From assembly GCA_977016875.1 (NCBI GenBank), contig CDRNST010000004.1, positions 806,001 to 870,000 on the forward strand: a stretch of DNA of 64,000 nucleotides, read 5' to 3'. The notes beneath the pieces are model-generated. The model did not search any database, had not been told where the DNA came from, and was given only the letters and a program-made list of their open reading frames with translations. A program made the translations under genes and the position numbers. Within the stretch, counting starts at the first letter, position 1. Each line of letters begins with the position of its first letter. Shown piece by piece: positions 4,894 through 59,427 of this stretch. Origin of the DNA: Pavona decussata (lineage: Eukaryota).

Positions 4894-5409
4894 ACTGAAC
4901 ATCTTACCTTAACTTTGTAGGAAGCTACTGAATCTCCATGTCCCTTCAATGGATCCAAAAAAGAGCAAACGGAAAAGGCGGTTATATTCCTGTATTCCTG
5001 AAGCTGGAAGCGAAGAAATCTTACTCTTATTGGAAAAATTAACATTGTAAAACCTTAGGTTTTTACACAATTGTCCTAGTATGTGACTGCGACTCAGTGC
5101 TAAGATTATTAAAACGTTTAGAAGAATTTAAGAATTTGTGTAAGTGGCTTAGAAATTAACACAAGCAAAACCGAGGCTATGTGGCCAGGTACCTGGAAAA
5201 ACCGCACAAATGACCCTTAGGCTTCAAGTGGCTAGATGATCCGGTTCTCGGCCTTGGAATATACTTAAGTTACGATTCCGAACACGCTAGGATGCTTAAT
5301 CTGGAGGAAAAGATAGATAAATTGGAAAAACCCCCAGTTACTGGAAACGAAGAAATCTTACTCTTATTAGAACATTTAACATTTTAAAAACCTTAGGTTT
5401 GTGTAAATT

Positions 5410-5584
5410 TAATTATAGCACCTCTGTATTAACAATGTCAAGACATGATGTGGAGAGAATCAACAGAATCAGTTTCAACTTTATTTGGGATGGCAAACCT
5501 GCGAAAATAAAAAAGAATACTATTATTGCTGAAAGGAGTATGGCGGTTTAAAAATGATTGACTTTGAACTTATGGAGAAGTCGC
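5410..5584 (+). mobile_element. L1/Tx1 LINE ORF2 fragment
   Basis: Encodes INRISFNFIWDGKPAKIKKNTIIAE..GGLKMIDFELMEKSL, a post-RT region motif. Cut at its 3' side by the piggyBac. Confidence 0.7.
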
Positions 5585-5588
5585 TTAG

Positions 5589-16915: not shown

Positions 16916-18590
16916 CCCTTTTGTTAGGGAACAATTTTTTCCTGCAAACCTGGTTTATAAATCTGGTTGTAAGTCCTCAGCATTAAATGTTACCCCCCCC
17001 CCCCCCCCTTATAAACTATACGTCATTTTACTCAGGATAAAATATCCTTATATTCAGAATACATTTAATTGGCCATTGATCCTACCATAAATATTTTGAG
17101 CTGATTAAAATTTAATGAAAAAATCTGTGTGATGTGTTGTTTGCTAGTCTCACTCTTATTACACATCATATCTTCACAAAGGGACTTAGAAACTTTTTTT
17201 TTATTATCTTAAATATCATGATGACAACCAAAGGTGTGGCCAAAATTTCGGGTTTCAAGAAATTTGAACTTCCTCACTACATAAAAAAAAAAATCATAAC
17301 AAAACTTTGTAAAAGCACAATGTTCCACTGGGAATGACTGTTTGAAATCCTGAGCTTGTGTAAAGCAGGGAATATCACTCATTTACAACAAATGGTAGAG
17401 TCCACCATCTATGGTGGGAAACACTACCATCCAGAAACAGTTCCAATGATGACAGGCTGAAGCGCAGAAAATATTATTCAGTCATGTCAATAGACTATTC
17501 AGTTAACTCAAAACAGCAATCAATTGGCCCAAAACTATCTCCAATATTCCACAAGTGTATGCCATTTCTCCCAACAATTGCGATGGGAAAGCAGGCAAAA
17601 TGGTTTACGGTCACATGTGACATAAACAGTGTTTGTTCCGGACTTCAGGTTCCTGCTAAGATTCTGAACGGAGACAACCTTAGCACAAACTACACAGTTT
17701 TGCCTCCTTGCATCTACATTGGCAAGAGGCCGGCTTGACAAACACCCAGGCCTCCCACAAAAACACTTTCCCTCCAACAAGTGACGAAGGATGGGGAATC
17801 TGTATGAAAGGAAATCTTCAGGCATCTGGTTCACTTTCTTGAATGTCGTAAATGAATTCAGCAAACAGACTTCAAGACCATAGTAGAAGAGCTTCTTTCT
17901 GGCTTTCGTAGACTTGCAGATAACAGAGAAGCTTTGAAGGATTTGATCAGCAAGGTCTACTCTGCCCATGTTTTCTTGATAGCCACACTGTGCCGGAGGA
18001 CATGGTACTAGTTCACGAGGGCCAGCTTGAGAGCGATGCGGAACTGTAGTTGGAGTTCCTATGCTTTCTTGAGGATGGATGGTGGAGATCATATACACTG
18101 GACGTTTATCATACCAAGCCATGGCAACAAGACGTCCATGGCTTCTCCAGATGTAATCTCCACGATTCATCCTCCTTACCATCGCAGGGGTGATGGCAAT
18201 GTTCTTGGGGAACACTTTTCGATTTGCCCTTATGGTTCCACAGGCAAGTACTTTTTTGGTTTCAAGCTCGAAAAAAAGATGAGGGTCACAGGAAAAATTG
18301 TCCATATATAAGTTATGATACTTGTCCTGAATCGGAGCAAGGTGTTTTACCACCCTTCGAGGTTATTTGTACTCTACAGCTCCCTCTTCTCTTACTAGGT
18401 AGACTTGGAAGTTGAAGACATAGCCAGTCTTGGCCTCGCGCAAGACCCACAGTTTTATCCCCCATCTCACTGGTTTGTTCTTTATATATTGTTTGAATGA
18501 GAGACAACATTAAAATAGAACCATAGTCTTGTCGATAGAGACATCCTGGTCAAGGTGATACAGGCATTGCAATCGCTACTGTGAAACATT
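16916..18590 (-). mobile_element. Second piggyBac remnant, PGBD4-like transposase C-terminal half
   Basis: TTAA-CCCT terminus at 16912-16919. ORF 17535-18353 with LYMDNF, LACGTIRANRK, WYDKRPVYMIST, MGRVDLADQ and a C-terminal CVVC..C..C..C..H. Upstream SIDKTMVLF motif near 18520. Confidence 0.88.
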
Positions 18591-34420: not shown

Positions 34421-35093
34421 ATTTTTATTTCTTTTAATACATTGTGTAAACCAGTTGCCCTTGCAATTGCCTTGCTGTTTACATCTGATGAATGCCCTTC
34501 AATTCTGTTACGAGGTCATGTGATGCCTATCAAATGGTATGAAGTTGCAGTTGCAGCAGTTTACTTTTGGAGTTTTTCTCACATAACTTTATATTGTTAA
34601 AAAAAACTTATGGACCTTACTTATATACTCATGAAGCTTCCCTGTCTTAGCCAAGACACTTTTCAATCCGGTATTGCTTAAAAGAGCTGACTCAAAAGGA
34701 CCTTGGACAGCTGACGAAGTTTACATAACGTAATAAATCCTCGATGTTCTAGTACTGATGCACACGACAATGGGGCTCAGATTATTTTCCAGGCTAGGAA
34801 AAAATGACTTCCTGATATCAAAAGAAAGCGATTTTCGGATTTAGTGCTGATCTATAGTGGTTAGGGTTTTAAGCAATGACTCACAATAATTAGTGTACTG
34901 CAAATGAAGAGTAATTACCAAGCTGGCTACCCGGGTTCGATACCAACTCTCTTTCCTCTTTTATTATTAAGCCGTGAAATTAGTTTTACTCTGTGTAAGA
35001 TTATAAGTTTATAGTGTCCTTTCAAGGCATCCATATTAACCATGACTGTTCAATCCCTTAGAAAAATAGACAATAACACCCACCCATGACCCC

Positions 35094-35740
35094 TCAGCCC
35101 TTTTGAAACTGACACCAGCTCATTACAGAATACTGCTTTACTGGAGATATTGATATCATTGTATCTTTCTGGACGTCCAGCACAAGATTCCCCCTGGGTT
35201 GGTCTGAGGAAAGCTTTGGCCTGTTCAAAGTGAAGCCCTTAGGTGGGTGAGGGATTTGCATCAACCACTTTGTGCTTCCCTCCAGTTTTCTTAACATCTC
35301 ATACCCCCCTCCTTCAGCAAGGGCAGAGAAGGACTCTATTATCTTTTCGTGAACATGAAGCGCATTCCTGTCTTTGTTAAAGACTATCTTGGCCTCTCCC
35401 AAGCCGGCCATGCTCAATCGGATTCTTTCACTGGCGTCTGGAATTACATCTTTTTCACTGTATACCTGGCAAACAAACGTCCTGGTGAACGTGTTTTTTG
35501 GAATAAAGTATGGTCTTGCCCCTTGACTAGCTCTAGATGGACACCTTGCTACTGGCCCTGACGGAGGCCAGAAACTGAAAATCCTTCTATGTTCTTCCAA
35601 CACCTAAGTAACCGGCGTTGTTGATCTCGCTGGTGTTGTTGCTGTTGCTCCCGCTGTTGCTGTCGTGGGAGTGTGTTGAACTGACACTGCTGCTCCTGTG
35701 GATGTCGTGGGGAGGCCATTTGCTGCTGCAATGAGCCTTT
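35094..35740 (-). pseudogene. Accessory gene fragment resembling the N-terminus of TE-associated G2E3/HECT-like proteins
   Basis: FTRTFVC..P..ERIRLSMAGLGEAKIVF..HEKIIESF..L.EGGGYEMLR with a Gln-rich leader. Convergent with the transposase. Confidence 0.55.
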
Positions 35741-37059
35741 CGGCGCTTAGGGAAGCTTGCCCAGCTAACAATAAACATTGGGGATGCCAAAAAAATACCA
35801 CCTTATGAAATGCATTTTTTTATGCAATGCCACAATAGTGTGATATAAATGCAGTGTAAAATCTTTGTGACAAACAGAGATGAGAGTTTGACTGATGGAA
35901 ATAAGATTCAGTCTAATGGGATTTTCTTTCGGGTGTCCACTTACGGGAGCTTAAAAACAAAGAAAAAATCTAAATCACAACCCCTGAAAGAGTTTGTGGC
36001 CACTTATGGTAATGTCCACTTACGGGAATGCGTAACTACAAAGTTTGTATGGGAGTACAAATGGGGTTTTGTAAAGGCGGTCATTAGTACAGCTGTCAGC
36101 TTACGAGAGTGTCCATTATTAGAGAGCTTCCACTGCATTACAATCTTGAAATTTACTAACTATCCAATAAGTGAATATAACAAATCTAGCAATCAATAAA
36201 CCAGACAAACAATCCATCAATCATTTGGGACGAACTGCAGTAAGCTGAAAACAAAAACAAAAAAATTCACACAAATATATCAACAGCCGAGGTAAACTGG
36301 TGAGCATTTGTTTGCTTGAATATTAGGGGTTTGGGGCATGATTCAAGGATAGTTGATCAGGTCATGTCCCTGATACTAAATCTGTCACTCATAGCAGAAA
36401 GAACATCAGATATCACAGTTCAAATAAGTTATACTTGATCATTGAGTGTACATTTTGATGCAAAATACCAAATAACTAACCTAGCGCTTCTGACTTTCTG
36501 GAATGGAAATGCATTCTTTGAGAACTGTTGTCTTGAGATCTCTGCGTCTCAAGTTCGAAGAACAACAGGGCATGACCCCCGGACCAGAATGATTCTTTGG
36601 TAGCCCAAAGACATGACACTGGCCCTGAGTAGTAGACATGTTGCCCGGTAGTTGCTTGTCAGTAGCCCTTTAAAAGCCACCTGCAAGTTGTGCAAGCCAC
36701 TTTTAGAAAATGACTGCCTTACTCTAATTTTCCATGCTTCCTCACATGCTCCTAGAGGGAAAAACAGGCAAAAATAGAAAAATCCTGTCATGCAATTGAT
36801 TAGGTCATTTTTGTGTCCTGGATAAGACATTGGCCATGTTTTAGATTAGTCTATATCTATTTGGTCTGATAATCCTTATAAAAGTCTACAATGGACTGCT
36901 GGGGGATAGATGGGATGCAAAAAACTATCGCCCTATCACTTCCCTTAAAGCAGTTATTTAGTCACCAGCTGATTTGCACTATGAGAAAACTGCAAAATGA
37001 GTTGAAGTGTTTTGAGCAAATTTTTGTTGTTTGGATTCTGCCTGAAGGTTTGGGCAGGT

Positions 37060-37460
37060 CTCCCATTATAGATGTTTCAAAATTGACCTAACTGACCTTA
37101 ACCATCCCGTTGATTTTGTTGCGTTTAGAATCTAAGTTAATATCCTCTCCTCTTTGAATGATTTTTTGAATACTAATTTTTTAGTTAGGAAACGTATCCT
37201 TTACTTTCAGTGCAGGGCTCTTGAGTTTGTTAGCACATTATTCGGCAAAGTCCATTGCTAGATTATTAGCCAAGGTGTGGATTATGAGATGAGATGGATC
37301 AGTTGCATGGCCGATACTCCCAACAGCCTTGGCAATTACATCAGTGGTTTACAGGGATTTAAAAATTTACATACAGGTCTTTGAGAGAGCTTCCCTGGAT
37401 AAGTGAGCTTTATCACCCGGTTACCAACTATGATCATGGGTCTTGTTTTAGCAAATTCAC
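37060..37460 (-). mobile_element. CR1/L2-type ORF1 SGNH-esterase remnant
   Basis: DPSHLIIHTLANNL..CANKLK..KVKDTFPN.KISIQKIIQR, with several stops. Confidence 0.5.
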
Positions 37461-38078
37461 CATCATTCGAGTTTTTACCATTAACTGGAGAGACGTTTTT
37501 AATTTGTTGCACTCGCTCCTCTCTGCTTACATAACATGGTGAAGGAGGAACATAACTTATTTAAAGCGCTTTTGACTTCTTGGAATAGAGTCAGGTACCA
37601 GGTTCTCTTCAGTTTGGTTGATGGGTGATTGTTGTTGTTGGCTGGTAATTTGAATATTATCATTCTGGCTTCTGTTTGCTGTATTTTAATACAGCTCTTT
37701 GGTCATGATTTGAAGTGCTTTTCTGTCCAGTAGTTCAGTTGTCTTTTTAGTGTGCTTCTCTCTTCCTGAAGCCATGCTCACAACATGCAGATTTCTTGAG
37801 AAAGGTTTTTATTTGGTAGGGTGTTAATGAGCTGAACATTATTGACATCACCTTTGGTTGGGCTGATCAAGTGAAGCAAAAGTGGTCAATTTTGAGATTA
37901 ATTTCTGTCCAGATTTTAAGATAACTTCAGTGGTAGATTGTGCCTTTCTGAGGTCATCGGGGGTATGGCTCAAGTTTCTGTTAAATTAATGCTAATAGTG
38001 TTGACAGAATGGCGAGAATTGTGGCTCTCACTTTTAATTTCAGCATCACAATCCACGCCAAAATAAAATTATGGTGTA

Positions 38079-38610
38079 ATGGGTAACGGCAAGGAAACAG
38101 TTTCCACACTGTTTCTAAAGATCATAATAGGCAAGCTAAATAACATAGAAAGCAGAATGGAGAAGACGTTTATTAATTTGCATACTCAAATGTCAACTCT
38201 TAAGATGCCAACTGAAACAAGAAATCGAAGTTGTACAAGTTCAATCAAAGGGATAAAAAGTATTGTCGACAATGCGTGGGCTGCTATTGAAGATGTTCAA
38301 GAACAGCTCAAAATTTACAAGAGTTCGAAAAGGACCCATCAGGATATGCTTGACAACCAGTCTCAGGAAATCAAACTTTTTAAAGGAAAGCTAGTGAAAT
38401 CACAAGCTTGAACTGTGCTCCTGATCTCAATGCATCAAGGAACACAAAAAAATCTTGTTGGCACTGAAGATTATGAAAGGATGGAAAATTTCTGTTTCAT
38501 TAACATCCCCAAAGTTCCTGATGAAAGTGTTTCTTGTATAGTCTGGCATAATTGAGACCAAGCTAAAGATAAATCCAGCCAGTATAATATTCCATGCTAT
38601 ACACCAGGGA
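38079..38610 (+). mobile_element. LINE ORF1 (coiled-coil/RRM type) remnant
   Basis: Heptad-rich ORF 38079-38411, then EDYERMENFCFINIPK and FHAIH, resembling the LExYSRRxNLRFxGIPE motif. Confidence 0.55.
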
Positions 38611-39448
38611 AGGAGGATGTGATGTGAAAGTTATTAATTGAACCCTTTTGCATCAACAAGGATGCTTCTCACCAACATCCCACAAGATTTTCTTCCTGCC
38701 TCCTGTTAATCTGCCAACAGAAGTTACGGTTTTTCCTGTCCAGCCCTTTTAGCCAGAACCCTGCCTGGTTATTCTCAGACAAAGTACTCCGAAGAACATT
38801 CTGCAGTACTCAATATTTGAGTGAACAACCAGGAGATAGATTTATAGAAATTGATTATTTCAGTTTAATTCAAAACCATTATTAAACGATGGATAATTTT
38901 ACAAACAAGCGTAGCTTATATACATATTGCAATAAATACAAATATCACGCATAATTTTGTAAAGAAATAAACAAAGCAAAGAATCCTAACAATGTTCTTT
39001 GCAAACAATGCCAATTCCTTAGAGTGGACAGTTTTGACAACAACTCTGTCCATTTTTTCGACTTGCATTTAAACAAAACAAGTGTTGATGTCAAATTTAA
39101 CACTGTCTTCACTCCCGTAACAATTTGTTCCATACACCTGTATTTTGCTCCAAGGGACCTGACTATAACTTGTTAGTGTCCTAGTAACTTCTAATACTTC
39201 GTGCGGGCAAGCAGGTAACATGAGCAACAAGTATTAAGCTATTAAGATCACGTAAACTACAAATAAAGTTAGTGGTTACAGTCTGAGTAAACTATCTCAA
39301 TGTACACTAAACTCGCTACTGTTGTTTGCATGTAGAGCTAAGAAGGTTAGCTATGTTTCTATTTCCTTTAATACCGGTACTGAAAGATCACTCATTTTCA
39401 AAGACTTGATGTTCTCCATCTTGGAAATTGTACAATATCCATTGTTAA

Positions 39449-40081
39449 GGTGATTCCGCTGAAAAAGAAGGAGTATTTAAAATTGTCTAAGACTTGGTCC
39501 AGTTCATGACTATGTTATGAGCATTACAAAAATGCAATAAAAAATGAGGGTCACTGTGCTCGTTTCTGTGCAACCTGGATGGCTATTATAGTAAATAGAT
39601 GACCCAAGAGGTTTATGGTAGAAACGCTAGTGATCAGACAAGGGAACTGTCATCTCTAGAAAAATTAATTTCTTGCATTAAAATATCGAAGCAGTTCAAC
39701 AAAATTCACTTTAATCTTACACAACAAACTATTTTCATTGAACTGGAATTAAGATTATGAAAGAAATCAAAGATTTTGCTGCGTGTGCACGTAAGCAGCA
39801 CTACCTAAATACGTGCTTTTTAAAGCATTCAAATAAAAATATCTCAAAGTAGAGTATTAAACTTTTCTTTAAATCGCGATATATAGTAGCCAACCGTATG
39901 GCATTTAAATTGATGCATTAAAAAATGGGGGTCACCGTGCTCGTTTAGAAGAAAAGGACCATTTATTTTCCTGCCGAGCTTAACGTCAATGAAGTCCCGT
40001 AATGTTCTGCGTGCGCGCGCGGTAAATGGTGCGAAAAACTATGCGCAGCAAGGATGCGCAATGCAATTCAACGGAATCACC
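39449..40081. mobile_element. Non-autonomous Kolobok-like element
   Basis: TTAA at 39445-39448 and 40082-40085. TIR ggtgattccgctgaa / ttcaacggaatcacc (14/15 match). Confidence 0.85.
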
Positions 40082-40189
40082 TTAACCAGTTTCTTGACCA
40101 TGAATCCCAACAGTTGAATAGGAGACAAGGTTGTCAATTTGTTTTGGTTGGTCACTGAACTTTTTCTTGAGAACAGTAGCTGCATCATC

Positions 40190-40320
40190 TTCAGATTTCC
40201 ATTTACCCATGAAATGCTCTGAGCTCAATTGCGTGTTCTCCAAAGGCTTGAAGTCTTTTCTTCTTATGCGATCTAGACATGTCTTTTGCAGATGATTATC
40301 CTTAACAGCCGTTGTCAGTA
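40190..40320 (-). pseudogene. THAP-domain fragment
   Basis: LQKTCLDRIRRKDFKPLENTQLSSEHFMGK resembles the THAP W..IRR..F.P...LCSxHF motif. Confidence 0.45.
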
Positions 40321-43300
40321 ACTTTCAAGAATCCGGCAACAGAAGCAAAAAATCGAATTTCTTTTTACTTGCCCCAAAAGACCCTTTTGGTGAACTATTT
40401 TCAAAAATAATATTCAAAAGTTCCAGCAAATTTTTATTTTGGCAAAAATTGGGAAAGTTTGAAATTGGCCTAAACGTGCCCGATGGCCGGATTGAAATTA
40501 TGCAAATTAGTACATTTTCAAAACTCTCGTTCAAGACTAGGAAACTTTTTCTCGAGTTGATGTTTTCACAATCGTTTTTTTGCATCTCTTGTGCTTGCTT
40601 ACAAACTATATTTTATCTCGACCTGAACATTTTTTCATTTGAAGTTGCCAAGGAAAGAATGCAATGTTTGCTATTCCTTAGATAGAGTGATTTTTGCGAT
40701 ATTCCAGATGACCATATCATCGGGGGTATACGAATATACTGGTAATAAAAGAACTTTTTTGATCAGGTAATTGTTCTTATTTGTCATCTTAAAATATTAA
40801 GTTTGGCCCGTGAAACGTGAGTGCGCTAGGTCAAGATGTGTGGAATGCACTTTGACACAATTCGCTATTTCAGTACTTTATGTTCTTCCTGTTACTTTGC
40901 ACGTGTCAATACAGTTCACGGAAGCTTTTAGATAAAAGCCAATGAGGTCTCTGGTTTCCTCTCATGCTTTTATACACGTAAATAATTAGCTTTAAAATTT
41001 AGTGCTCCCCATATTAGCATTAAGTTGTCAAATGATTCTTTTCAGGTGAAATTTTCGAGTTTATATTGAGACGTTCAAGCGAGATGAAAGAAATGTTCCC
41101 AGGTAAATAACTTGAAATCAGTGAAAATAATATCCTCTCTCATATCATGCTACACTTCCAAACTACCGTTATTTTTAAGCTAGAAAGTGTAAATGCTCCC
41201 TTTTTACATGACCTAAAACAGAATTTGCCAAAATATTACGAATGAAGTCCAGCGCAAGAAAAAACTGAAAAAATCGAGCACCAACGTAGGTGTAAACACC
41301 AGCCGTTTCTCGACTTGCCACATGGATGAAACGCGTCGGTTGTTTTACCTCTGTGTACATTTATGACCAGGAAGTAGAAACAAAAAATCTTCTCTATGCC
41401 CATCTGTATAAAGACACTTAAAACACAGAAAGAGCACGGCTTTCTTCGTAACTTACAAAATAAACTTTTCAGCAAAAATTAATTTTTGCTGAACGTTTGC
41501 GTGTTTTGTTTTATCAAACACCCGAAGCGGAACACAATCAATACATCTTCTTAATGTAAGAGCGCCTCTTTTTGTTCTTCCTTCCTCCTTTTTTACATGC
41601 CTTAAGCTTCCCTTTTGATTAGTATTTTCATGTGAACAGGCTGATTTCTCTTGCAACATGGTAGAAAATATCGTTTTTCTTTGAATAGTCCTCCCGCGAC
41701 GAAAATTAAATTACCGCCTTCTGCGTATAGAGTTACCAAATAAATTTGTGCGGCTTAAAGCAGTTTTGCTGACAATAACCTAATCTTCTAAAGAGAATGA
41801 TTAAAAACTAAGTTCTTGGAATATAAAGTAAGAAACACGTTTTATAAGATCGATTGCTTTTTAAATGCCAATTACTTTCCTGAGTGAATGCAAAATCTTG
41901 TCATTCAAGGGAAAGTCACGCATGTAGGTAGGAAAAATATAAGCAATGAAAAGTTGACCAAACGACTCGCAAAATTTAATGTTAGGATTGTTAGCTGAAG
42001 TGAATTTTGGGAGTGCTACTTTAATTTTTGTACCCTTGCCTTTTTTTTCCATTAGTCTGTCAAAATCCCAGTATCGCCTGATACATCACATGGTTGCCTA
42101 TTGGCGAGTAAATTGATAGAGTCAACACCGAGTATTCTTAGGGCCTCATTATATGACCTTTACGTCGAAGCGGCAATCGTCGTAACCGGGTAAGGTCGGT
42201 AAACTGAGGTAACTCGAGCCTCCAAGAACTTGTTATTGATTTTCAACACCATTTTCACTTTTTTATTTTGTTTGTAAGTTCGATTTCGTTCGATTACCGA
42301 ACTCAATCGTACTCTTTCCACGGAACCATCATTTCCCGGTTTAGTGTGCACAAGGACAGTAGTTGTAACGAACCACCTTTGTAACAAGTAAGAGTGGTCT
42401 TTAAAATCAATTACGGGAGTTTCAACCTATAAAATTTGCAGTGCTTGACTGTCCTTTTTTCAGGTGGCTTTGAGTTCTATTCAACGATCATGAATTTTAA
42501 TGTAAATTAAATACAATTCCCCCAGTTCTCAGCCTGCAGAACAAATTTATTTATATATTTATTGTGTTTTTTAGGCGAGTGTTGGGAAGCGCGCACTTCG
42601 TGCTTGCCTCCGCTCGCCTGTAGTACCGGCGAGTTACTTACCACCTCTATATGTAATCCATGTCTGGATGAGTCTGGAATATGAAAATGACAACAATTGA
42701 GTTATTTATCGATTGCGTGGTGTTGTGGGCGTACATGAATTAAAAAAAGTAAACAAGCTTAATAGCTAACTCTACTCACCTGGTCAAAGACCATAGTATT
42801 TTGTAGGAAGCTTATCAGCTCTTCCAAAAAATCTCTGACTTGATCGTCATGTACCTCAAGCTGATCAATAGCAAAAGAAATAAACTCGCATTTATAAGTT
42901 TTTAAAGGATTACTGCTTGTCAAGAAGTCTTGCTAAATAAAAATTACCGTGAACGGTGTTGAAGGCGAAGCTATTGCTTGACAAACAAGCAGTGTGGTGT
43001 GATATCAGTGAAACAGCCGTAATACGCATGAGTTACCCAGGCCACATTTTGAATGTGAATCATAGGAATATTTTGGGTATGGGTATTGTTAAGGTGAAAA
43101 TTTGTGAGACGCATCTATTCATTGAAACATCAAAAGATAAACAGAGGAAAACAAGAGATCAGAAGTTGAAGTTTTTCGACAGAAGTGGCATGACTATCGA
43201 CGGTAAACTAAACACGAATTTAACATCGCCTGTAGCATCGCGGAAGTCATGTTTTTGAGCGTATTATATCAAAAACGAAAGTTCTCAATAAGAATATGTA

Positions 43301-43714
43301 TTGTATTGAAATCCTATGCTGTCAATGTTCTAATAGGCGCGATTTCCTAATAGACCTTAACGCATTGTTTTCATAGTTTTGTTGGTGACGTCACAAGGGT
43401 CACGTTGGGACATAGGCCGCAAAAATGTTATGTTTAAGCTACATACTAGCAGTTATCATAGATTATGTAGAGCGTTTGGCACCTTAAATTGAACAAAGTT
43501 TGCAAAATGGTGCACTCTTTCATGTTCGTTTCAATACAGAAACCCCAAGCTTTATGAGAGATGTAGGCTGTGACCTTTGCGTGGTTACGTTTTCAGCTAT
43601 AAGAGTTCCCTTGTTTCGAGGTGCAGAAATCACACATTGTATGCCAGCACAAAGAAACTTTCCTTGCAATAAAAGCATCTTTATCTATAGCTGTCACAGT
43701 TAAAATCCCCAGGT

Positions 43715-43815
43715 TTTCATTGGACGGGAAACAGGTGAAAACCGGAAGCGACTCTTTTTAGTAATGATGCACGTGGCGCAGTTAAGCTAATTCAGACCTG
43801 CGTCATCAACGTGAC
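43715..43815 (+). promoter_or_regulatory. Candidate proximal promoter of the Frizzled-CRD gene
   Basis: Within ~160 bp of the ATG: reverse CCAAT (attgg ~43719), ETS ACCGGAAG (43741), E-box CACGTG (43770) and CRE-like TGCGTCA (43799). Confidence 0.4.
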
Positions 43816-43872
43816 AGCTTGTTTAACGCCCGAACCAAGCCAAACCAGAACTTGGCGTCCTTAAGCAGCAAA

Positions 43873-44472
43873 ATGTTAGCGATCCTGTCCTATCTTGTGG
43901 TATTAATTTTAACGGCTGAACCTGTGGTTACCAAGGACATGCCAAAGTGTAGGAACATGGTAGTTCCCATGTGCAACAGCATTTTCGGCGCCAACACAAC
44001 TCACCATACCACCATTACAATCGCACGTCAAAAGGAACTTGGAAAGGAACTACGGACACATTTTATGCTTCTTGTGCACATGAAATGTTCTCACTTCACT
44101 GTTATGTTTGTTTGCCTGAGTCACCTGCCTTTCTGTTCAATGAGCCACACTGATCTTCCAACACTATTGCCATGCCGTCCTGTTTGTCATCATGTGTATC
44201 ACCACTGCATCTGCCATTTTAACAAGCTCCGTCTTCCCTGGCCAAAGCACATCAACTGCACTAAATTTCCTCTTTATCCAGAACTTTGTATCCAGTCGCC
44301 GTCAGTATCTTCTTTTCAACCAACAACAGCTATAACTACCACTAGAACTCTCACAAGGTTATTTTATTCAAGCCTCCATCCTACGTTGCCTTCCACTACG
44401 CCACCGCATCTGGTCACCACTTCACACACGGACTCAGAGAATGACACTCTTATAAATTTATTTGGTTTTTAG
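43873..44472 (+). CDS. Intronless signal-peptide + Frizzled cysteine-rich domain (FZ/CRD) + Ser/Thr/Pro stalk protein; TM-containing extension in the -1 frame to 44648
   Basis: AAAATG start and hydrophobic leader MLAILSYLVVLILTA. Ten CRD cysteines in canonical spacing (C..VPMC, C..FVC..LPFC, PCRPVC..C, WP..NC.KFP..LC). T/S/P-rich linker. Confidence 0.85.
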   Translation: MLAILSYLVVLILTAEPVVTKDMPKCRNMVVPMCNSIFGANTTHHTTITIARQKELGKELRTHFMLLVHMKCSHFTVMFVCLSHLPFCSMSHTDLPTLLPCRPVCHHVYHHCICHFNKLRLPWPKHINCTKFPLYPELCIQSPSVSSFQPTTAITTTRTLTRLFYSSLHPTLPSTTPPHLVTTSHTDSENDTLINLFGF

Positions 44473-44614
44473 CGGACTTTGTTCCCAGACTCATTTCTTC
44501 TCTGTATATTGTTTTGATTCTTCTTTGTTTATCCCTTTTTGTACCTTTAGTTTTGTTTGTGGCCTACGTTTGGTGGCTCAGGTTTAGGGTGGAGCGGCCT
44601 CGTCCACAGAATAT

Positions 44615-44775
44615 AAGCCTTAGACCTTTATTGAGAATTGTATTTTAGCCATTGACCTTGCCATTGTCATTTTAAATTATATTTATTTAGGATATCTTTA
44701 TTGTAAAGCGCGTGAGAGCATCTGTTTATGATTCCTGCGCCATATAAATAATAAATTATTAATTAATTAATTAAA
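44615..44775 (+). mobile_element. L2/CR1-type LINE 3' tail
   Basis: tgtaaagcgc.tgagagca...gcgccatataaataataaatt(atta)n. Same architecture as the RT-linked L2 tail at 59430-59535 on the minus strand. Confidence 0.7.
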
Positions 44776-47307
44776 TATCCCGATAAGGGAGATCGTGGGA
44801 CCACTCTCCCCTATTCCTGAGCAATGAAACTTTTTTGGAGTCGTATTGTTGTAATTCTGCTGTTTTGTTTCGTCACCAAATGTGCATGTTGCCATTTCAA
44901 AAATTTGATACATTTTGCTTTCACTACATTGTACCAAAAGATAGGTATTAGATATAAAATTTTGGCTATGTTTTGTTATATGCTCGTTCTCTTTAATTAG
45001 AATATTTTAGATGACCAGTTCTGCATTGTTTGATTAATGATTTTTATTTAAAAATCGCGCAAATCAAAAATAGGTTTAAAAATCCTTAAATACGGTAACA
45101 TTGGTCAAGACTTTCCTATTTGTTCTGGCTCTGAAAAGAGCCGTTTTGCGAAGCCATAAGAAGAACCGTTCAAAGTTGATTGAAGAAAAATTCTTCCATA
45201 TCGTTGAGTCTGTCCACCATTAAAACGATGCCCCCTCCTATGACACAGTATTGTTCCAGCACCTTGCCTAAATCTTCAAGCGAGATGGAAGAAATGTTTT
45301 TCAGAACTTCCAGGAGTTGCTCTCGTCGAGTTTGCAAAATATCCACAAGACCCAAGCGCTCATCACGAATGAAGTTGATCTCCTTCATCTAAAATCTGTG
45401 TCCTAATCTACTGTTAAAACAACAGCAAACCCTAAATAGAAATATAGATAGAAAAATATGGATCAAAATTACAACTCACAGGAATGGAATGGTTTATTTC
45501 CTGAGAGGTCCGCAAGATAAGTGGGATTGGCAGCACAGAAATAATTGATAACTTTGAAGTTACCTAGCAATAGTTAACTTTGGACTAGAGGGCATAAGCG
45601 CTTTCTTGAGACATGTGAAAAGACCTACATTTCTATGACCTGCTGTAGTTATACAATAAATTGCGTCTTTCGCAGAGGTGAATTGTGAAATGAAATAGTT
45701 TGGTGTTTTTTTAATTGGTGTTCATATAATTGCAGCGTGGAGGTACGAAAGTTCACTTCGAGTTTTGAAAAGTATATCACGAGTAGTAAAACGTTTTGAA
45801 ACTTCTTACATCCATGCTTGTTGAAAAATTATTCGCCATAAAAGTAACTAGTACATCAGTGAAAGTTATTGTTTATCGTTTGGTCGGCGGCCGCTTGCGC
45901 GACACAAGCGCACTCTCACGGCAAAACAGGAATATTTTCGACAGCTGTGATTAAATAGCAATGAATCGTTGAATGTATCTGGCTTGCTTTTCAATACTAA
46001 AGTATTCTCTTTTAGTAGCGGTGCATCCGAGGTTTGTTTTGTTGGAAAGCGCCTTAAATTCATTAGCTCCTCTGCCAATAGGACAAAAGGATACCCATTA
46101 GATCTTGTGTTATATCGAAAAAGGATTTTTTTTTTCATCAAAAAATTGTACGTGATAAGTTTCCCAAACGTTACTATGTGAAGTGGCATACTGAACGTTG
46201 CACGCATGAAAAAAAAATCAGGCTTGGTCACCGAGCAAAATTTCAAGTCAAAGAATGTTTCTTGCAGCTTTTATTTTATGCTGCATTTCCACCTCTGTTG
46301 TTGTGCGCGCGCGGCTTTTGATAGACGCTTTGACTCATTCAGCTGACGCGTACACCCTTGTTATGGCGTGGGTGAGTTTGGCGCGCACACGCGGCTACAA
46401 ACCCTTTCGAGAATCCTAAGCAAATTGTTATTTCACGTCGAAGAAAATGAGGCAGGTGGCCCGCGAGTTGCGTGAGATTCCAGTGCATATTTCTCCCAAA
46501 ACCAGTTCTCTACTAAACTTTCCATTGTTAGTTAATTGAAAACAAACTTTCCTGGAAAGTCAATGAACTCACATAACGTACGACAGTTTTTAAATGTGAC
46601 CATTCCCAAAGGATCGAAATTTTATTCAAATTTTGTAGGATTGAAAGAGTGGCCTGGAATCCCAGATAACAATAGGATAATCTTTGCTGACATCATTGTT
46701 TACATTTGGTGTTGTTAGCATACGACTTTACATAGATTAGTCTTAAATGAAGTTGTTACAAAAGTTGAAAGAGTGTTCTAAGCTTAATTTTGATGCAATT
46801 TTTCTCTCTTCTCGTGTGATTTGAAAAGGGATACCAGCTTTCAAAAACTATTTATCACTGTGACTTTCACCAGGCAATGTTTTGTTGCCTAGAAACAGAA
46901 CCAAATAGCCAAGGACTGATAGCTATAGGTGCTGAAGGCCCTAGAGATCTTGGGACCACCTCCCCCCATTCCTGAGCAATGAAACTTTTTGCGAGTCATA
47001 TTGCTGTAATTTTTTAAAAAATTTCTGCTGTTTTTTTTCGTTACCAAATGTACATGTTAGTGTCACCAAATGTACATGTCACTGTCCAGATACCGACCCC
47101 CTTAGGAGTGCTTTCTTGATAAATGGATTATGCTAAACACTTGGTTCCCATTAATAAACACCGACTGCATGTGGTTGAGAAAATATTGAGAAACACATCT
47201 CGATGAATCCCATGTGCTGTAAGCTCACTCTTTCCCCTCTTTGATCATTCCTTTTTTGGCCTAATCTTTACAAAGATTGACAGGCGTATGTATTTCATTT
47301 ATCAAAA

Positions 47308-47660
47308 GTGACAAGACCGTCCATGTAATTTGTTTTATTATACATAGCTATTTACATCAGAACGTATTGCTGTCCTAGTGGGAAGACCGTCCATGTAATT
47401 TATCATACATAGCTATTTACAAGCGGAACGTATGGCTGTCCTGGTGACAAGACCGTCCATGTGATTTATTAGACATAGCTATTTACAAGCGGAACGTATG
47501 GCTGTCCTAGTGACAAGACCGTCCATGTGATTTATTAGACATGGCTATTTACAAGCCGAATGTATGGCTGTCCTAGTGACAAGACCGTCCATGTAATTTA
47601 TTATACATAGCTATTTACAAGCGGAATGTATGGCTGTCCTAGTGACAAGACCGTCCATGC
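47308..47660. repeat. 66-bp minisatellite, ~5.3 copies
   Basis: Unit starts gtgacaagaccgtccatg at 47308, 47378 (variant), 47444, 47510, 47576 and 47642. Confidence 0.95.
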
Positions 47661-48289
47661 AATTCATTTTATTATGCTATCAACCGGCACCTGATATGGA
47701 AACTGGACTTTCCTTAGACCTATAATATTTTTCAAAAATTCTAAACTTAAACTTTTTCTGCAGCAATAGGCTTGAGATTGATTGTCAAAATTATTAACCT
47801 ACTTATAATGCTTCTGCAGGAATAGATCTGAGACCACTCAAGGACGAAAGCAAGTAAAATATCCAGGGAGATTTATTACTCCTAGGTTTTTTTCGTGTCA
47901 TGTAAACTATTTATTCAATGATTGATTGAAACCACTTGTGGAAAACAACAAAAATTTCGAAATTGCAGATGTTTCGAAATAACTGACAGTAAATGAGTGA
48001 AAAAAAAAGACCCTTTAAGGGAAATATATTTGAGTTCGAAATGGCGAGGGTACTGTTTAGAGAGGATGAGGTAAGAGGGCCCATCCCCGTGCCCCACAAT
48101 AGTTTTTTTAATCTATTTAAAGTTTAATGCTTCGCTGTGATTTTTGTTCCCATGGTCACACAGCTACGTCATTACAACTGGCCTATCAGGTGTCTCTCTC
48201 AAAATAGCGAAGCAGCTAAAATTGGATCTCAAAAAACTATAATTGGAAGCGGTCCATTTAAGGGGATGGGTTCTCTTACCTCATCTGGT

Positions 48290-49265
48290 ACTGTATCTAC
48301 TCATTATCCTCATTATCACCTTCCATTTGTAAATAAATTTCTCTTTGGGGCTCCAGCATGTATTTGGAGGCCATTGCCTTCAGGTCCTTTACTTTGGCTG
48401 GGTTGAGGGGGAGCTTGCCACGGTAGAGTTTGTCCGGCTGGTCAGTTAAGGTCTGGATTTCTTTGATTTTTAGTTTTTTCCACGGCTCTGACGAGGAAAA
48501 AACCGGTTCTGATCCAGATCTCATTGGGGTGGTGCACAAGTCTTACTCCTTCTTCGTCCTCTTCGTCGCTGCACCCAAAATCCATCCATTGCATTTCCCT
48601 TATCCTTACTTGGCTTCCATCCTGGTACTTTTTTCCCATCTTGTACTTCATGTCACCCTGCTCCACTTCTGTTGCGATGAATGGTTTCTTTAAGTTGGCC
48701 TCCCTGATGACTTGGGTCCAATCGCCTGGCAATAAGACTTCAGTGGTCCTCTTTCTCTTTACTATTAGACTGAAATCGCGTTCATTTTCGAGGAAAGTGT
48801 GACCCCTCACCAGAAACTTATAGTTAATTATGTCATACACTCCCCTTTTGTGCATGTCGTGAAAAAGGGAAATTATGGTACAGTTCTTGTTTTGCCCACC
48901 ACAGCCATCGGAAAATGTGACGAGTGATCTGTTAAAAAAAGAAAGAGAAACGGGTTTTGTTTGCATTCTTTCTAAAGCGTTTTTAGAATCAATTGAACAT
49001 GCAAGCTGATAAAGATTGGAGAAAGTCAATTTTTGCAAAATATTATAATTTGTAAAGTGAAATGCCATGTCGAGGTAATCTATGCTTTCAATAAATTCTA
49101 CAAATTTTAATTTTTTATTGGGGCATCACAATAAATTACACAGAAAAGGCAGCCAGCATTGTACCTTGCTCCTGTGCTGTTCTCAATGATGTGCTTCAAC
49201 AAGCATGACGCAACCTCGGAAGAGCCCCTCTTTGCTCTGGTTTCGTCCCAGAAATACACATAACC
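48290..49265 (-). mobile_element. Sola1-like DDD transposase pseudogene (spliced)
   Basis: Exon [19 protein letters not shown] (49165-49265), then SDGCGGQNKN, KFLVRGHTFLENERDF and LPLNPAKVKDL. Confidence 0.8.
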
Positions 49266-50519
49266 CTATAGATCAACACAAAAAAATAGTAAATATACTG
49301 ACTACAGTGTAAATAGTTTAACAGTTAAGAGATGTAGTGCCTCTCGGTTACATCACAGCTACCCAAAAACAAAATTGAATTTAAGCTTATAGGACTGGCT
49401 ATTCGAATATTTCATCGATTTTTCAAGAAAATGAATTCCCGAGTTTTCCGCGCAGTTGAAACTTGAAAGTGTAGATTGTTTTTCCCGAGATCTAATTCAA
49501 TACGATTTCCATATTTTGAAAGTTGTTTTTTTACTCGAGGTCAGTGTCCTAAGGGGTAAAAAATGGTGTCAGGGTTTTCCTTAATTCGAATTCATTCAAA
49601 AATTACAGAATAATTTTAAAACTTCGAGAAAACCATGCGAAGGGAACGCACAGAAATGACTGTGAGGGGAATAATTTTTCGAATAATTGAATTCCCCGAC
49701 ACTAGTTTTGTTGTTTATAGATTATTCTAGAATCTGGCCAAATTTGACTAAAATCGGCTGAATCGCTTTTGAGTTGTGACTCTTGAAAGTGTCCCCTTCA
49801 AGCGAAAACTAGAATTTGAGAAAACAGCACTTGAATTGTCACGCAAAGTTTTACTTCCCGTAGAAATCGCTTACATCCTAATTTCTCGGCAAATATTCAC
49901 TCATTTTCAATTTTTTTATTTGAAAGATCTTGCGGGAAAGTTTAGTTACCACTGTACTTATAGGGCCCGGTATCCTTAACTGATTAATGCAAAAGCTATA
50001 ACTATAGCAATTTTGGTTATTTTAATCCACGGGATGTTTCATCGGTTTTCATTAAATGCAGAAGAAGTTTGTCCAAAAATTGCCCCCGTCGCGTTTTGTT
50101 TTGCATGGCCCCGTGAAAAGTGGACTATTCCTTCACAAATAATCGAGTCCTAACCAATTTTTGGATTGGTCAGCACCAACTATTGCTGTAGTGCAAATAT
50201 GCCTAGCTAAAAGTATAATCAGTCTAAATGGTTATAATAAAACCTATCAGTCATGCATGTAGCCACATGTATATGGAGTGACAAAAAGTGGGAGGAGGGG
50301 GGAAAGGGTTATTGGTGACTTAATTGTTTAGGTATGACAACAGCCCTTAAGCTCCCCAAAAAGTAAAGAAGAATTTTAAGTCCCAGTGAAGGATCTCACT
50401 GGTCTAAAAGTAATTTAATGATATAAGCTCCAGTTAAGCTTATTGATGATTTATTTTTCCTTACTCATGAGATACACACAAATAACAGCATGCAGAAGTG
50501 GGCGGTTCTTAAATGAAAA

Positions 50520-53500
50520 CAAAAATACGGTAATCAAAGTGATACCAAAAGGAAATGAAGCGAAATACTTGAATAGATCCTACGAATGATGTAAGCATTT
50601 GTAAGTAGATTAATTGATGTTTGCCGAGGACAGCTGTGTAACTAAATCTTGGTGGTCTTGCATATACATGGCCAATACTTTTAAGCTCAGGCTGATGGAC
50701 ACCAAAGAGGTCCCAAAAACATAGAATGATATAAATCCTGTCAATCAACAGAGAAATATACCCTTTGTGTATCAACCATAAATTGAAGCTCTATAAAGCA
50801 CACCCCATCAACACTCCTTTATAAGCCTGGCTCACTAAACACAGGGATACCAATGTCAGTTTCTCTCTACAACAAAAGTTGGTATTCATTGAGGAGATCA
50901 TTTTGCCATGGTAGGTTGAACATTGTAACTTGTTTTTTAAGTTACATGTAGTCTTGAGGTAAACACTGGTCATTTGAAATGACCTCGCACCCACTTCCTT
51001 CTTTATAATAAGTCCACCTTCTCAAGGCTTAAGAATTAATGATAACTTTAGTATGCCTGACTGGTGATACAGTCCAAGCCACACAACATCCAAGCAATAA
51101 ATCAAACTCAATTTATTTTGAGCACTTACATCTGCTGGAATTGTAAATTTAAGCTCCCTGGAAATATGACACTCAAGGTGACTCTTTGTGTTGGAGGTGG
51201 TGGGGGCCGCGATGGAAGCACTTTCTTCTTGTTCGCCAGTATTGGAAACTGTAGGTGCCCTAAGCTCTGTGGGTGATGAGTCGTCTGCTCCATGTTTATC
51301 ATGAAAAGTATCATCTCCCTCCTCTTTGGTTGGTGTAATTTTTAATGTTTGTGGTGTAAATGGTGCCAGTTTGGCAGGATCTCTTGTGGCTAAATTATTT
51401 AACTACAAAGAGATTGTTGAGGTTCTAATGATAATGATATAAGTAACTAAATTAATTTAATACACTCTCTAAATTTACTACACTAAGACTAATCCAGGCA
51501 CTCAAGAGTCCAATTATATTATCGTGGTTGTGACTTTCAATCTGTGGAAGTCACTGCTCCTGTGATGTGGTCCTTTTTACTCATCAAATTTTGTCTACTT
51601 ATTTTTAACTTTTTGTTTTACATTTTCCTGTGTCAATTTCAATGTAAGGCGCTGTTGTGAGTGAAAAGTGGCATTTTGATTACCTTTTGAAAGGCCTTTT
51701 TAAGGTGCTGCAATTCCTCGTCTATTTTGTCCATTTTTCTTTCAAGCTTTCTACAGCCATCACATTTAGTGTTGTACATGTTCTTGTTTTGTGGCGAGCG
51801 TGATAGGAGTGATGCATGTGGTAGAGGTGTCAATGAGGATGAGGACGATGGACCTGGGCCTGGAGACACTGTAGTCCCAGGGCTTTGAGATGGCTGCAGT
51901 GGTGGTCATGTGACTACTGGAGGTTTGACAACAGAAGGTGTCCCGCTCAGCAAGTTCTTTAAGTTCTAAACCTCAACCAACTTTCTACAGTCACCCATTT
52001 TCTTAGTCTGTAAATAAATACAATATATATTTTCTCTAACCCTCTGGCTACAATGTAAATGTACTGTAAACAAACTGTAGTGACATACATGCACTGTCTT
52101 ATTTTTTACTTACTGCTAAGTCAAGCGCAATGAAATATATTCATCACACTTTTAAGAAATTTCTTTAATCAGAGGACTCATGTTTATTAAACGGACTCCA
52201 AGATTACCTTGTTACGGTTTTTATTTGCCTTTGAAAGTGGTACTTTCTTTCGACAGGTCTTCACATTCATGGATGCAGGCTCTGTAGGTTCTGTAGGCAT
52301 GGATCATATCAATATTATAGGAAAACAATATTATTAATTGAAAGGAACATTTTGTTTGGGCTATTTACAAGTACATCCCTGCAATAATTTTTTACTTTGT
52401 TCCTAACATCAGTGTCCAATTTAGTGTAGTGGCATTTAAAAATTACTGACCTTCATCTTTATCTAAAACTTTTCTTTGTCCACCTTTTTGTTTCTTACTT
52501 TTTTCACGGTCATCCTCATCACTAGAAATATCATCTAGTAAGTTATCTGTGGAGTCCATTCATCATCGCCCTCATCAATCTCGCAGCTTGCCATCATATT
52601 TGGTTTGGTCTTAAAATAAAAATAATTCATTGAGTCAATAATAAAATAATTTGGGCAAAACAATTAAAACTCCATGGCTTGGGTCACTGAGTTCCTTAAA
52701 ATTGTTTCATGGTTTTCAGTAACTTACCTTAACCAATAAATATCAAAGCTCAACCAACAAATGTTTCACTTCGCAGTCTTAGCTGGGTCATGCAGGTGAC
52801 AGTAATTTTTTTGCCCAAACTCTACACATACTTTAAAGAGGTTTTAGAACCCTGGTCATTGTATCATGAAATGGTCTATTGTTCAGGCTCAACTTTTGGC
52901 CATTGTGCCATTAGACAATAGTCCTTTTGTCCTTGGTGGCAGTGAGGGACTTTGGTTGAAGCTAAGCGGAAAAGCGCACGACTGATTGGGAAATTGTCGG
53001 CGTAACAATTTAGCTGTATTGGGGGAGTGAATAGTGTAAATTTGCACTCGTCAGGTCAATTGTCGCTGGTGTACCCCAAGGAGAATTGACCACCGGTGCG
53101 CGCATGCGCGCATCGGACTGATTAGAAATTAGAGAGTTAAAACAACAACATCAACAAAAAAAACAGCATGTCCGCATGTGTCTTATTCAGTTCGACCACC
53201 TCTCAATAAAATGCCTGGTTTAACTCGCAGCACTAAAACATTTATATGTGTGAACAAAACTGCAGGCTACCTACTTGAGAGACTCACCACCGCGCTAAAG
53301 TCACCTTGGCTGCGTATCAACTTGCATTCTGACAAACTACTTAAACATGCATTCCTCTTAATTTCAAATGTCTCGATATTAGCTAAACTCAAAATAAATA
53401 TTTACCAATTTCCCGCAGTTCCCAAAATGTGGGCTGCTCAGTGATGAATAGAGCTGCAAGCAACACCATCTGATCCCTGAAAAGGTGACAGAAATCATAA

Positions 53501-57639: not shown

Positions 57640-58224
57640 AAGCATTGTAAACGCCTTGATAATGGCGCCTCGATAGCTGTGATACAGCCAATACTGGCCC
57701 ACGGAATTCACGTGAGCGCCATCGGGCAAATAAGGATCACTACTGGGTTCTCAAAAGCCGACATGGCGCCAACAGAAAACGCTTTCTTGTTCGCCTAAAA
57801 CAACTTGCAGGTAATTGTTTAAAATCGGCACCGCCTTGTTGAAATCCGACCTATGTGGAGACTTTGTTCCACGAGGGAGGACCTCAGAGACGCCAACGAT
57901 TTTCACTGCGAAGGAACAGCGAAGGAAACGAACAAAATCATCAATAGCAGAACCTACGACCTCGGGTGCACTGACAGTTAAATCATTGGTTCCAATTTCG
58001 AGAATGACAATGTCTGGGGCAAACTCAGTAAGGACACCCAGGTCGTATTTGATCAATTTCTGGACCGTGCGTCCGCCGGTGCCATGTAAACGCACGTGGA
58101 CTTGCCCCTGTAGGTTAAAAGTCTCGGAGGCTCGCGGATCGAAATCGTTCTTAAGATCATGAGCTAATCGACGTACGAAAGAATGACCTAAAACGAGAAC
58201 TTTTGGAGAAAGTGTAGCTTCCAT
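57640..58224 (-). CDS. SGNH/GDSL-like hydrolase of retroelement type (frameshift near C-terminus)
   Basis: Blocks VLVLGHSFVRRL, GTGG and DIVILEIGTNDL. After a frameshift at ~57750: PDGAHVNSRGQYWLY..YRGAI. Confidence 0.75.
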
Positions 58225-59427
58225 CTTGCCAACAGAAAAATTGCTTAACGTAGCGCCATGCGGTCCGGAAATAAAGCAAGGCAAAACGAAACAAGTAGGG
58301 AAAAAATTGGTAAATAAACGCAATGAAGGGGAACGTAACCCCAACAAAGAAAATTCAGAACACAATAGAGTGAAATAGAGGGGAAAAACCGGGAACCGGT
58401 GGATTATATAGGCTTACCTTGAAAGAACAAAAGCACGTCTTAATCCGCTGCTGAACCAAGACGAATGACTATGGTATGATCATATTGATCATATGACTGA
58501 AACAAGCACCTAAAGGGGGCTATACGTTATTCCAATTCTTCCCCAAGACCCAGGACCACTCAATCCAATTGATTACTAACAAAGGCGGGAAAAGGCATAA
58601 AAATTCTATTTGCGGGCAAATATTTTATTTACAGATCAACAATTTTGTTCAAATTTATGAGAGTTGTTTTCAAACAAGGGTTTCAGGTTTGTGAATTCTA
58701 CATTACTGCAACATAGTCATGTAATCAAGTCTTGTCCACGTTGTTTGAGATGTCCCTTCTTCACTCTGCACTTCGAAAAACTTGAAAGGAACATTGATTT
58801 TCTCCAACTCTGTTTCAAGAACACCTTTCCTTTTGTGGTTACGGACCAGTTCGAAAACGTGTGACAAAATGTTTGGAGAGAGAAAGTTTTAAAGAGTCAT
58901 ACCACTTTATATTTATTTAAGTTCCACTAGAGGACTGAGTCTTGAAATGACTAATGGTAACTTCAAAATAAGCAGTGGCAGTTCATATACTTCTGTCAAC
59001 TTAAGTGTCATATCATTATATAGCAAACTTACTTGTAAAGTCAGCAATTTTTTGCCTTAATGCAGTAGCACCATATGCAGACGAATTTCGCTGTAGCTGA
59101 GTTTAGTCCATAAACCATTGCAAGAAATTTCCAATCGGAACAGCAGAACCTACATGTGGGAAAGAAAACTAATTCAGCATATTTTACAAGATAGGTGAAC
59201 ATCAGGCTTATACCCATAGTAACCCATGCAAATTACGAATAGAGTCCATGTTTTTCTGCTTGAAAGCTCATAAACTTGTAACCTATAACTCAATATCAAT
59301 GCATCAACTTACCATATCACTGAATAGTGTACACCATCCACCGTTATGCCATTTTTCCTTTAGTTCTTCCACTTGTAACAAAGTGGCTCTCAGGCAGGTC
59401 TGCACTTCATCATAGTCCTCTTTTCCT

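Follow-up and report, generated by a model that had tools for sequence, protein, structure and literature searches.

A coral single-pass protein gene with a Frizzled-type CRD: a frameshift allele, very probably in decay, with a retroposon-hit tail

The stretch of DNA analysed here, referred to as the window, comprises 64 kb (positions 806001 to 870000 of contig C4) of the genome G000, an assembly of 602 Mb in 1180 contigs. With a G + C content of about 39%, it contains just 12 open reading frames (ORFs) of at least 130 amino acids, several of which are transposon-derived. Among the latter are two minus-strand ORFs, one (17535-18353) matching the C-terminal portion of a piggyBac-type DDE transposase (profile DDE_Tnp_1_7, E = 1.4e-23) and the other (48442-49068) matching DUF7869 (E = 4.5e-7); a further minus-strand ORF (57751-58365) matches a GDSL-like lipase (E = 6.7e-8). 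The locus considered in the following lies on the plus strand and has these features:

43873 to 44472, plus strand: 0-frame ORF of 199 amino acids and TAG, with signal peptide, Fz CRD, Ser/Thr/Pro-rich stalk and 7 out-of-frame codons
43948 to 44289, plus strand: Frizzled-type CRD, Cys26 to Cys139, with the ten canonical cysteines and an extra Cys114
44290 to 44449, plus strand: Ser/Thr/Pro-rich stalk, evolving neutrally (dN/dS of about 1 in the stalk partition)
44445 to 44614, plus strand: coding sequence of the ancestral gene that has come to lie in the -1 frame, with juxtamembrane segment, transmembrane (TM) helix (core at about 44508-44564) and conserved basic motif WWLRFRVERPRPQN
44449 to 44450, plus strand: site at which, according to alignments A1 and A2, 4 nt (TTTA/TTAT) have been deleted, causing the frame offset; the exact position may shift by 1-3 nt
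44454 to 44460, plus strand: AAATTTA heptamer, in X XXY YYZ phase in the window; ancestral Lys-Phe-Ile coding sequence
44615 to 44773, plus strand: 159-nt 3' tail, truncated on its 5' side, of a non-LTR retroposon dispersed in the genome, with AATAT direct repeats at 44610-44614 and 44774-44778
44774 to 44827, plus strand: displaced original C-terminal tail NIPIREIVGPLSPIPEQ and TGA, located by tblastn with the intact orthologue P0003

The 0-frame ORF starts with the ATG at 43873 and is terminated by the TAG at 44470-44472, and its residues 1-15 are strongly hydrophobic and signal-peptide-like (mean Kyte-Doolittle value 2.61). Residues 26-133 match the Pfam Fz profile PF01392 (E = 9.6e-16, 58.8 bits as compared to a cut-off of 32.1, profile positions 1-107 of 110), and all ten canonical cysteines have counterparts in an alignment with the CRD of human Frizzled-7 (5t44_A); the eleventh, at residue 114, is present in the window copy only and is replaced by Arg in the sister copy described below. 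With respect to known structures, the top PDB matches are the CRDs of Frizzled-7/1/2/5 (E of about 5e-12), with sFRP3 following at 4e-7, and by these scores the CRD is Frizzled-like rather than sFRP-like. The signal peptide, the ten-cysteine CRD, the Ser/Thr/Pro-rich stalk and the stop that an initial annotation had read from this DNA are thus borne out by ORF reading, hydropathy, Pfam and the Frizzled-7 alignment. Likewise, the analysis supports its view that the product is a CRD protein of the single-pass type and belongs neither to the 7TM Frizzled receptors nor to the sFRPs, as Pfam gives no NTR or 7TM family match for either the 199-aa product, which shows Fz alone, or the -1 peptide, and as the intact relatives (251-283 aa) have one hydrophobic segment each. 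Equally in agreement with that annotation, the -1 frame is open after the TGA at 44442-44444, i.e., from 44445, up to the TAG at 44646-44648, and it contains a long hydrophobic segment with a core of 19 residues (mean Kyte-Doolittle value 3.15).

As to why the membrane anchor lies one frame behind the stalk, two explanations had been put forward, the first being -1 frameshifting that yields a secreted and a tethered decoy and the second, considered at least as likely, being the loss of 1 nt or an assembly error in the T5 run at 44466-44470. Paralogues of both the CRD part and the TM part are present in G000. The window was aligned with four paralogues from its own genome (C66, C45, C144 and C104) and, including two orthologous loci, with six other copies in total (n = 7). 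At 44449/44450, 4 nt are missing in the window alone, being present in four of four paralogues and in both orthologous loci; the junction reads CTC/TTAT in the window as compared to CTCTTTATTAT or similar in the paralogues, and in the C66 paralogue the stalk and the FIWFLADFVPRL segment share one frame. Accordingly, the second explanation was right as to the kind of event, since an indel was indeed found, but wrong as to its place: the T5 run with the following AG (TTTTTAG) is invariant in 7 out of 7 aligned copies, and a 1-nt indel therein is rejected. A canonical intron was also considered as the cause of the offset, given the acceptor-like tttttag at 44466-44472, but was rejected because no upstream GT has the phase that would be needed and the ORFs of the homologues continue uninterrupted across this region.

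Somewhat more elaborate is the assumption of a cryptic intron of 131 nt, extending from the GT at 44358 to the AG at 44487-44488, the removal of which would rejoin the CRD to the TM helix in frame. In its favour, the AG/GT at 44357/44358 arises from a window-specific AGT-to-AGG change, the acceptor ttgttcccag/a comes with a pyrimidine tract, and the junction is in phase, with an exon 1 of 485 nt ending in phase 2 and the TM frame resuming at 44490. However, the family is intronless with continuous ORFs across this region, the donor GTTATT is weak, having neither the +3 purine nor the +5 G, and, with about three GT and two AG candidates, chance alone would be expected to produce an in-frame pair, all of which makes splicing at these sites a highly improbable cause of an intact product.

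Relatives of the gene were found by a word-based protein search in ENA assemblies, and the window sequence is homologous to them throughout, with 79-84% amino-acid identity. P0009, which falls into the same 90% cluster as the product of the window itself, consists of one continuous ORF of 251 aa in which ...SENDTLYYKFIWFLVDF... runs on into the TM helix and then into the tail. Its locus (L021/L031 from sample ERZ25073751, contig depth 33.8x) is collinear with positions 34716-51514 of the window at 91-98% (about 96%) identity, with transposon presence/absence differences, and L021 corresponds to a single locus in G000, namely that of the window. From the same sample, a 2.6-Mb contig (L022, 37.9x) shows 100% identity with the window along 6.6 kb, a stretch that takes in both the 4-nt gap and the ORF. 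To judge by the collinearity and divergence of these sequences, the intact contig is probably the other haplotype of the same individual; alternatively, it might represent a duplication of very recent date or derive from a second genotype within the sample. Uninterrupted ORFs for single-pass proteins are likewise found in the word-search relatives P0003 (263 aa) and P0007 (279 aa), which are orthologues at a greater distance.

The continuity of the sister copy and of all homologues, as well as the A/T-rich, low-complexity context, would also be expected if the 4-nt gap were an assembly or sequencing error in a gene that is in truth one continuous single-pass CRD ORF. Against this stand three observations: L022, belonging to another contig set of the sample, reproduces the deletion independently, and an assembler slip is therefore unlikely; the loss of 4 nt outside a homopolymer is atypical of mistakes in long-read consensus sequences; and the intact version resides on a separate contig that differs from the deleted one by 144 mismatches and 23 gap positions over 4.5 kb, which argues against mixing of the two. 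An error is thus regarded as very unlikely.

With regard to mobile DNA in this region, the sister haplotype harbours, at L021:5157-6246 (corresponding to L031:12157-13243), an element of 1.09 kb whose ends are inverted over about 87 nt; the window lacks it, the empty site being located at about 46009-46019. At least 15 copies of it, with 90-98% identity, are spread across G000, three of them within 22 kb on contig C78, and the element has the appearance of a non-autonomous DNA transposon that was active recently. Another repeat insertion of this presence/absence kind in the sister haplotype (L031:2260-2948) has a copy on the opposite strand of the window at 1308-1996, 33 kb away.

It is correct, as initially noted, that A-AAT-TTA lies at 44454-44460, in phase inside the 25-nt overlap of the two frames. 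A AAU UUA is a genuine and efficient slippery sequence in viruses, and the gag-pol site of Rous sarcoma virus is generally known to have this very heptamer in this very phase; the viral site is conserved and needs a downstream stimulatory structure. A correctly phased heptamer in the overlap and an intact, conserved TM helix in the -1 frame are what programmed -1 frameshifting, with one mRNA giving rise to a secreted and a membrane-tethered CRD protein, would call for. In contrast to the viral site, however, no stimulatory structure is predicted downstream in the window, in keeping with what had been stated from the outset: the folding energy of 44461-44580 amounts to -12.7 kcal/mol (z = +0.86), and 162 out of 200 shuffled sequences fold at least as well. 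Moreover, the sister copy, the two more distant orthologues and the four paralogues do not have the offset but carry stalk and anchor in one frame, so that the proposed production of two decoy forms by frameshifting does not hold. In intact copies the heptamer site consists of in-frame Lys-Phe-Ile codons, which read AAA TTT ATT in the distant orthologue L020 and AAG TTT ATT in the sister copy, where the heptamer itself is AAGTTTA.

The phase of the heptamer is of no help in this respect. Any deletion of 3n+1 bases upstream of AAA-TTT-A automatically puts this sequence into slippery phase with the old frame at -1, and correct phase therefore carries no information. The plus strand of the window has, on average, one canonical XXXYYYZ heptamer per 120 nt, and the chance of finding one in phase within a 25-nt overlap is about 6%. 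To our knowledge, -1 programmed frameshifting in animal cellular genes is essentially limited to genes derived from retroelements, which also counts against it here. Taken together, programmed frameshifting has next to no probability as an explanation of this locus; given the efficiency of the heptamer in viruses, unassisted slippage at the deleted allele might nevertheless occur at a low level.

In addition to the deletion, the 3' end of the gene has been altered by an insertion. The hydrophobic segment had originally been described as being followed by a short basic tail, which is only partly true, since the last 11 codons of the -1 ORF (SLRPLLRIVF and so on) and its stop at 44646-44648 are contributed by the retroposon sequence. 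The inserted stretch (44615-44773) is absent from all paralogues and from L020, and likewise from P0003 and P0007. It is represented by at least 40 copies across the genome, with 91-97% identity, and other copies reach 125-417 nt further in the 5' direction but have the A/T-rich 3' end in common, which identifies the 159-nt stretch as the 5'-truncated tail of a non-LTR retroposon. An AATAAA lies within this tail and might possibly serve as polyadenylation signal. As the sister copy, which stops directly after QNISL, has the same insertion, the insertion predates the deletion.

Intact members of the family have a signal peptide, the CRD, a Ser/Thr/Pro-rich stalk, a TM helix, the motif WWLRFRVERP and a tail in one intronless ORF. 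The window copy, being split by the 4-nt deletion and having its tail broken by the retroposon, does not form one continuous ORF and is a disrupted member. Stops or frameshifts are found in six further paralogous loci of G000 (C66, C45:1.00M, C144, C104:7.19M, C273 and C80); L004 on C45 has a partial CRD match only, with no stop. Many family copies in this genome are, by the evidence of such lesions, dying. According to Nei-Gojobori estimates, dN/dS is 0.35-0.45 in the CRD, about 1 in the stalk and 0.5-0.7 in the TM helix and tail, suggesting that the family is under moderate constraint. The CRD ORF of the window is still intact, and its comparison with the sister haplotype yields a CRD dN/dS of 0.44 from 8 changes only, too few to show or to date a relaxation of constraint.

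A distant branch of the family (34% identity; L008, L009 and L011; 283 aa) is intact in G000 and has relatives in other assemblies. L008:1393-2217, L009 and L011, located on C104 and C132, are three near-identical, intact single-pass Fz-CRD genes of 283/264 aa, the proline-rich tail of which contains Tyr motifs, ends with PPLPPRKSNVEYQNIHIYSVIAN and has SH3- and SH2-like motifs. Intact copies, some in tandem, are also found in a second species or sample (ERZ26692669), with tandem pairs at L029:3001-3840 and 4211-5017 and at L030:3001-3819 and 5232-6146; several members from this source, e.g., P0007 and P0012, are without some of the canonical cysteines. For the 28 relatives retrieved from the databases, no source name is given in any case. 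Two short contigs with relatives that had been considered as evidence of expression were rejected, P0010 because it is a metagenome scaffold, and P0018 because it is a Logan contig of uncertain library type. The family, in which none of the relatives retrieved here bears a name, is intronless, multi-copy and fast-evolving, and has so far been seen in coral-type assemblies only.

Repeated DNA of 1-2 kb is located directly upstream of the CRD gene, from 42956-43258 (plus strand) back to about 41600. Positions 42956-43258 form an ORF of 100 aa that is called as a gene in public assemblies. This repeat also adjoins the C66 paralogue and is found on C56 and C45 without a CRD gene, which suggests that the duplicated unit exceeds the gene and may be transposon-associated. 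Downstream of the dead C66 paralogue lies an ORF of 164 aa (L002:2777-3268) that contains a Cys/His finger resembling a PHD finger, a feature typical of retroelement N-termini.

Taking the alignments, the sister contig and the relatives together, the locus is with good confidence interpreted as a decaying, haplotype-specific frameshift allele of a coral single-pass Fz-CRD gene with a retroposon-hit tail and without recoding. The ancestral product would have been a type I membrane protein that exposes its Frizzled-type CRD by way of a glycosylated, mucin-like stalk and is anchored by one TM helix, followed by a short cytoplasmic tail. The older of the two lesions is the insertion of the 159-nt retroposon tail into the codons of the cytoplasmic tail, which is also present in the sister haplotype and replaces the last 17 residues, and the later one is the 4-nt deletion at 44449/44450, which puts the TM helix out of frame and is probably confined to the haplotype of this assembly. 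Ribosomes would then stop at the TAG at 44470-44472, 7 codons past the deletion, and the allele, if transcribed, would thus give at most an anchorless protein of CRD and stalk. As the heptamer corresponds to ancestral Lys-Phe-Ile codons, no recoding needs to be invoked. By analogy with CRD-only Wnt modulators, the CRD plausibly binds Wnt or lipid at the cell surface. In view of the truncated tail, the unpaired extra cysteine and the dead sister paralogues, the allele itself is most likely non-functional or decaying, on its way to becoming a pseudogene.

In comparison with known proteins, the CRD is nearest to those of the Frizzled receptors (class F GPCRs), in particular FZD7/1/2/5 (E of about 5e-12, all ten cysteines aligned), but the family has no 7TM region and instead a single TM helix behind the mucin-like stalk. 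With sFRP1-5 it shares the N-terminal signal peptide followed by a CRD, and the broken allele would even yield an anchorless CRD protein; unlike sFRP1-5, however, the family is without an NTR, its CRD scores nearer to Frizzled than to sFRP3, and its ancestral state is membrane-anchored. Fz-type CRDs on single-pass proteins occur in ROR1/2, MuSK and MFRP, combined with kinase, kringle, Ig, CUB or LDLa modules, MFRP being a type II protein; the combination of a CRD with a single TM helix is common to these and the coral family, which is without other domains. A full-text search of the literature yielded no report of such a single-pass Fz-CRD family in cnidarians; closest were the FzCRD-1/2 genes of Platynereis (lophotrochozoans). 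The latter, frizzled-related and specific to their lineage, are described as coding for secreted CRD-only proteins that have a secretion signal and no NTR domain (PMC4669655). While lineage specificity, secretion signal, CRD and missing NTR are common to both, the coral family differs from this description by its additional stalk, TM helix and conserved cytoplasmic motif, and belongs to another phylum.

The idea that a cellular gene uses -1 frameshifting to alternate between a secreted and an anchored Wnt decoy does therefore not hold for this locus, which rather calls for caution, since an indel upstream of an AAA-TTT codon pair will by itself create a perfect in-phase slippery site. A very improbable alternative to a decaying allele is a functional polymorphism, in which one allele would code for a tethered and the other for a secreted CRD, and in which the deleted allele might contribute a little tethered protein as well, by cryptic splicing or by occasional, unassisted slippage at A AAU UUA; if so, a decoy family that is specific to this lineage and evolves fast would serve the coral to adjust the amount of available Wnt. 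Of modest remaining interest is the gene family as such, with its moderately constrained CRD and its well-conserved juxtamembrane motif.
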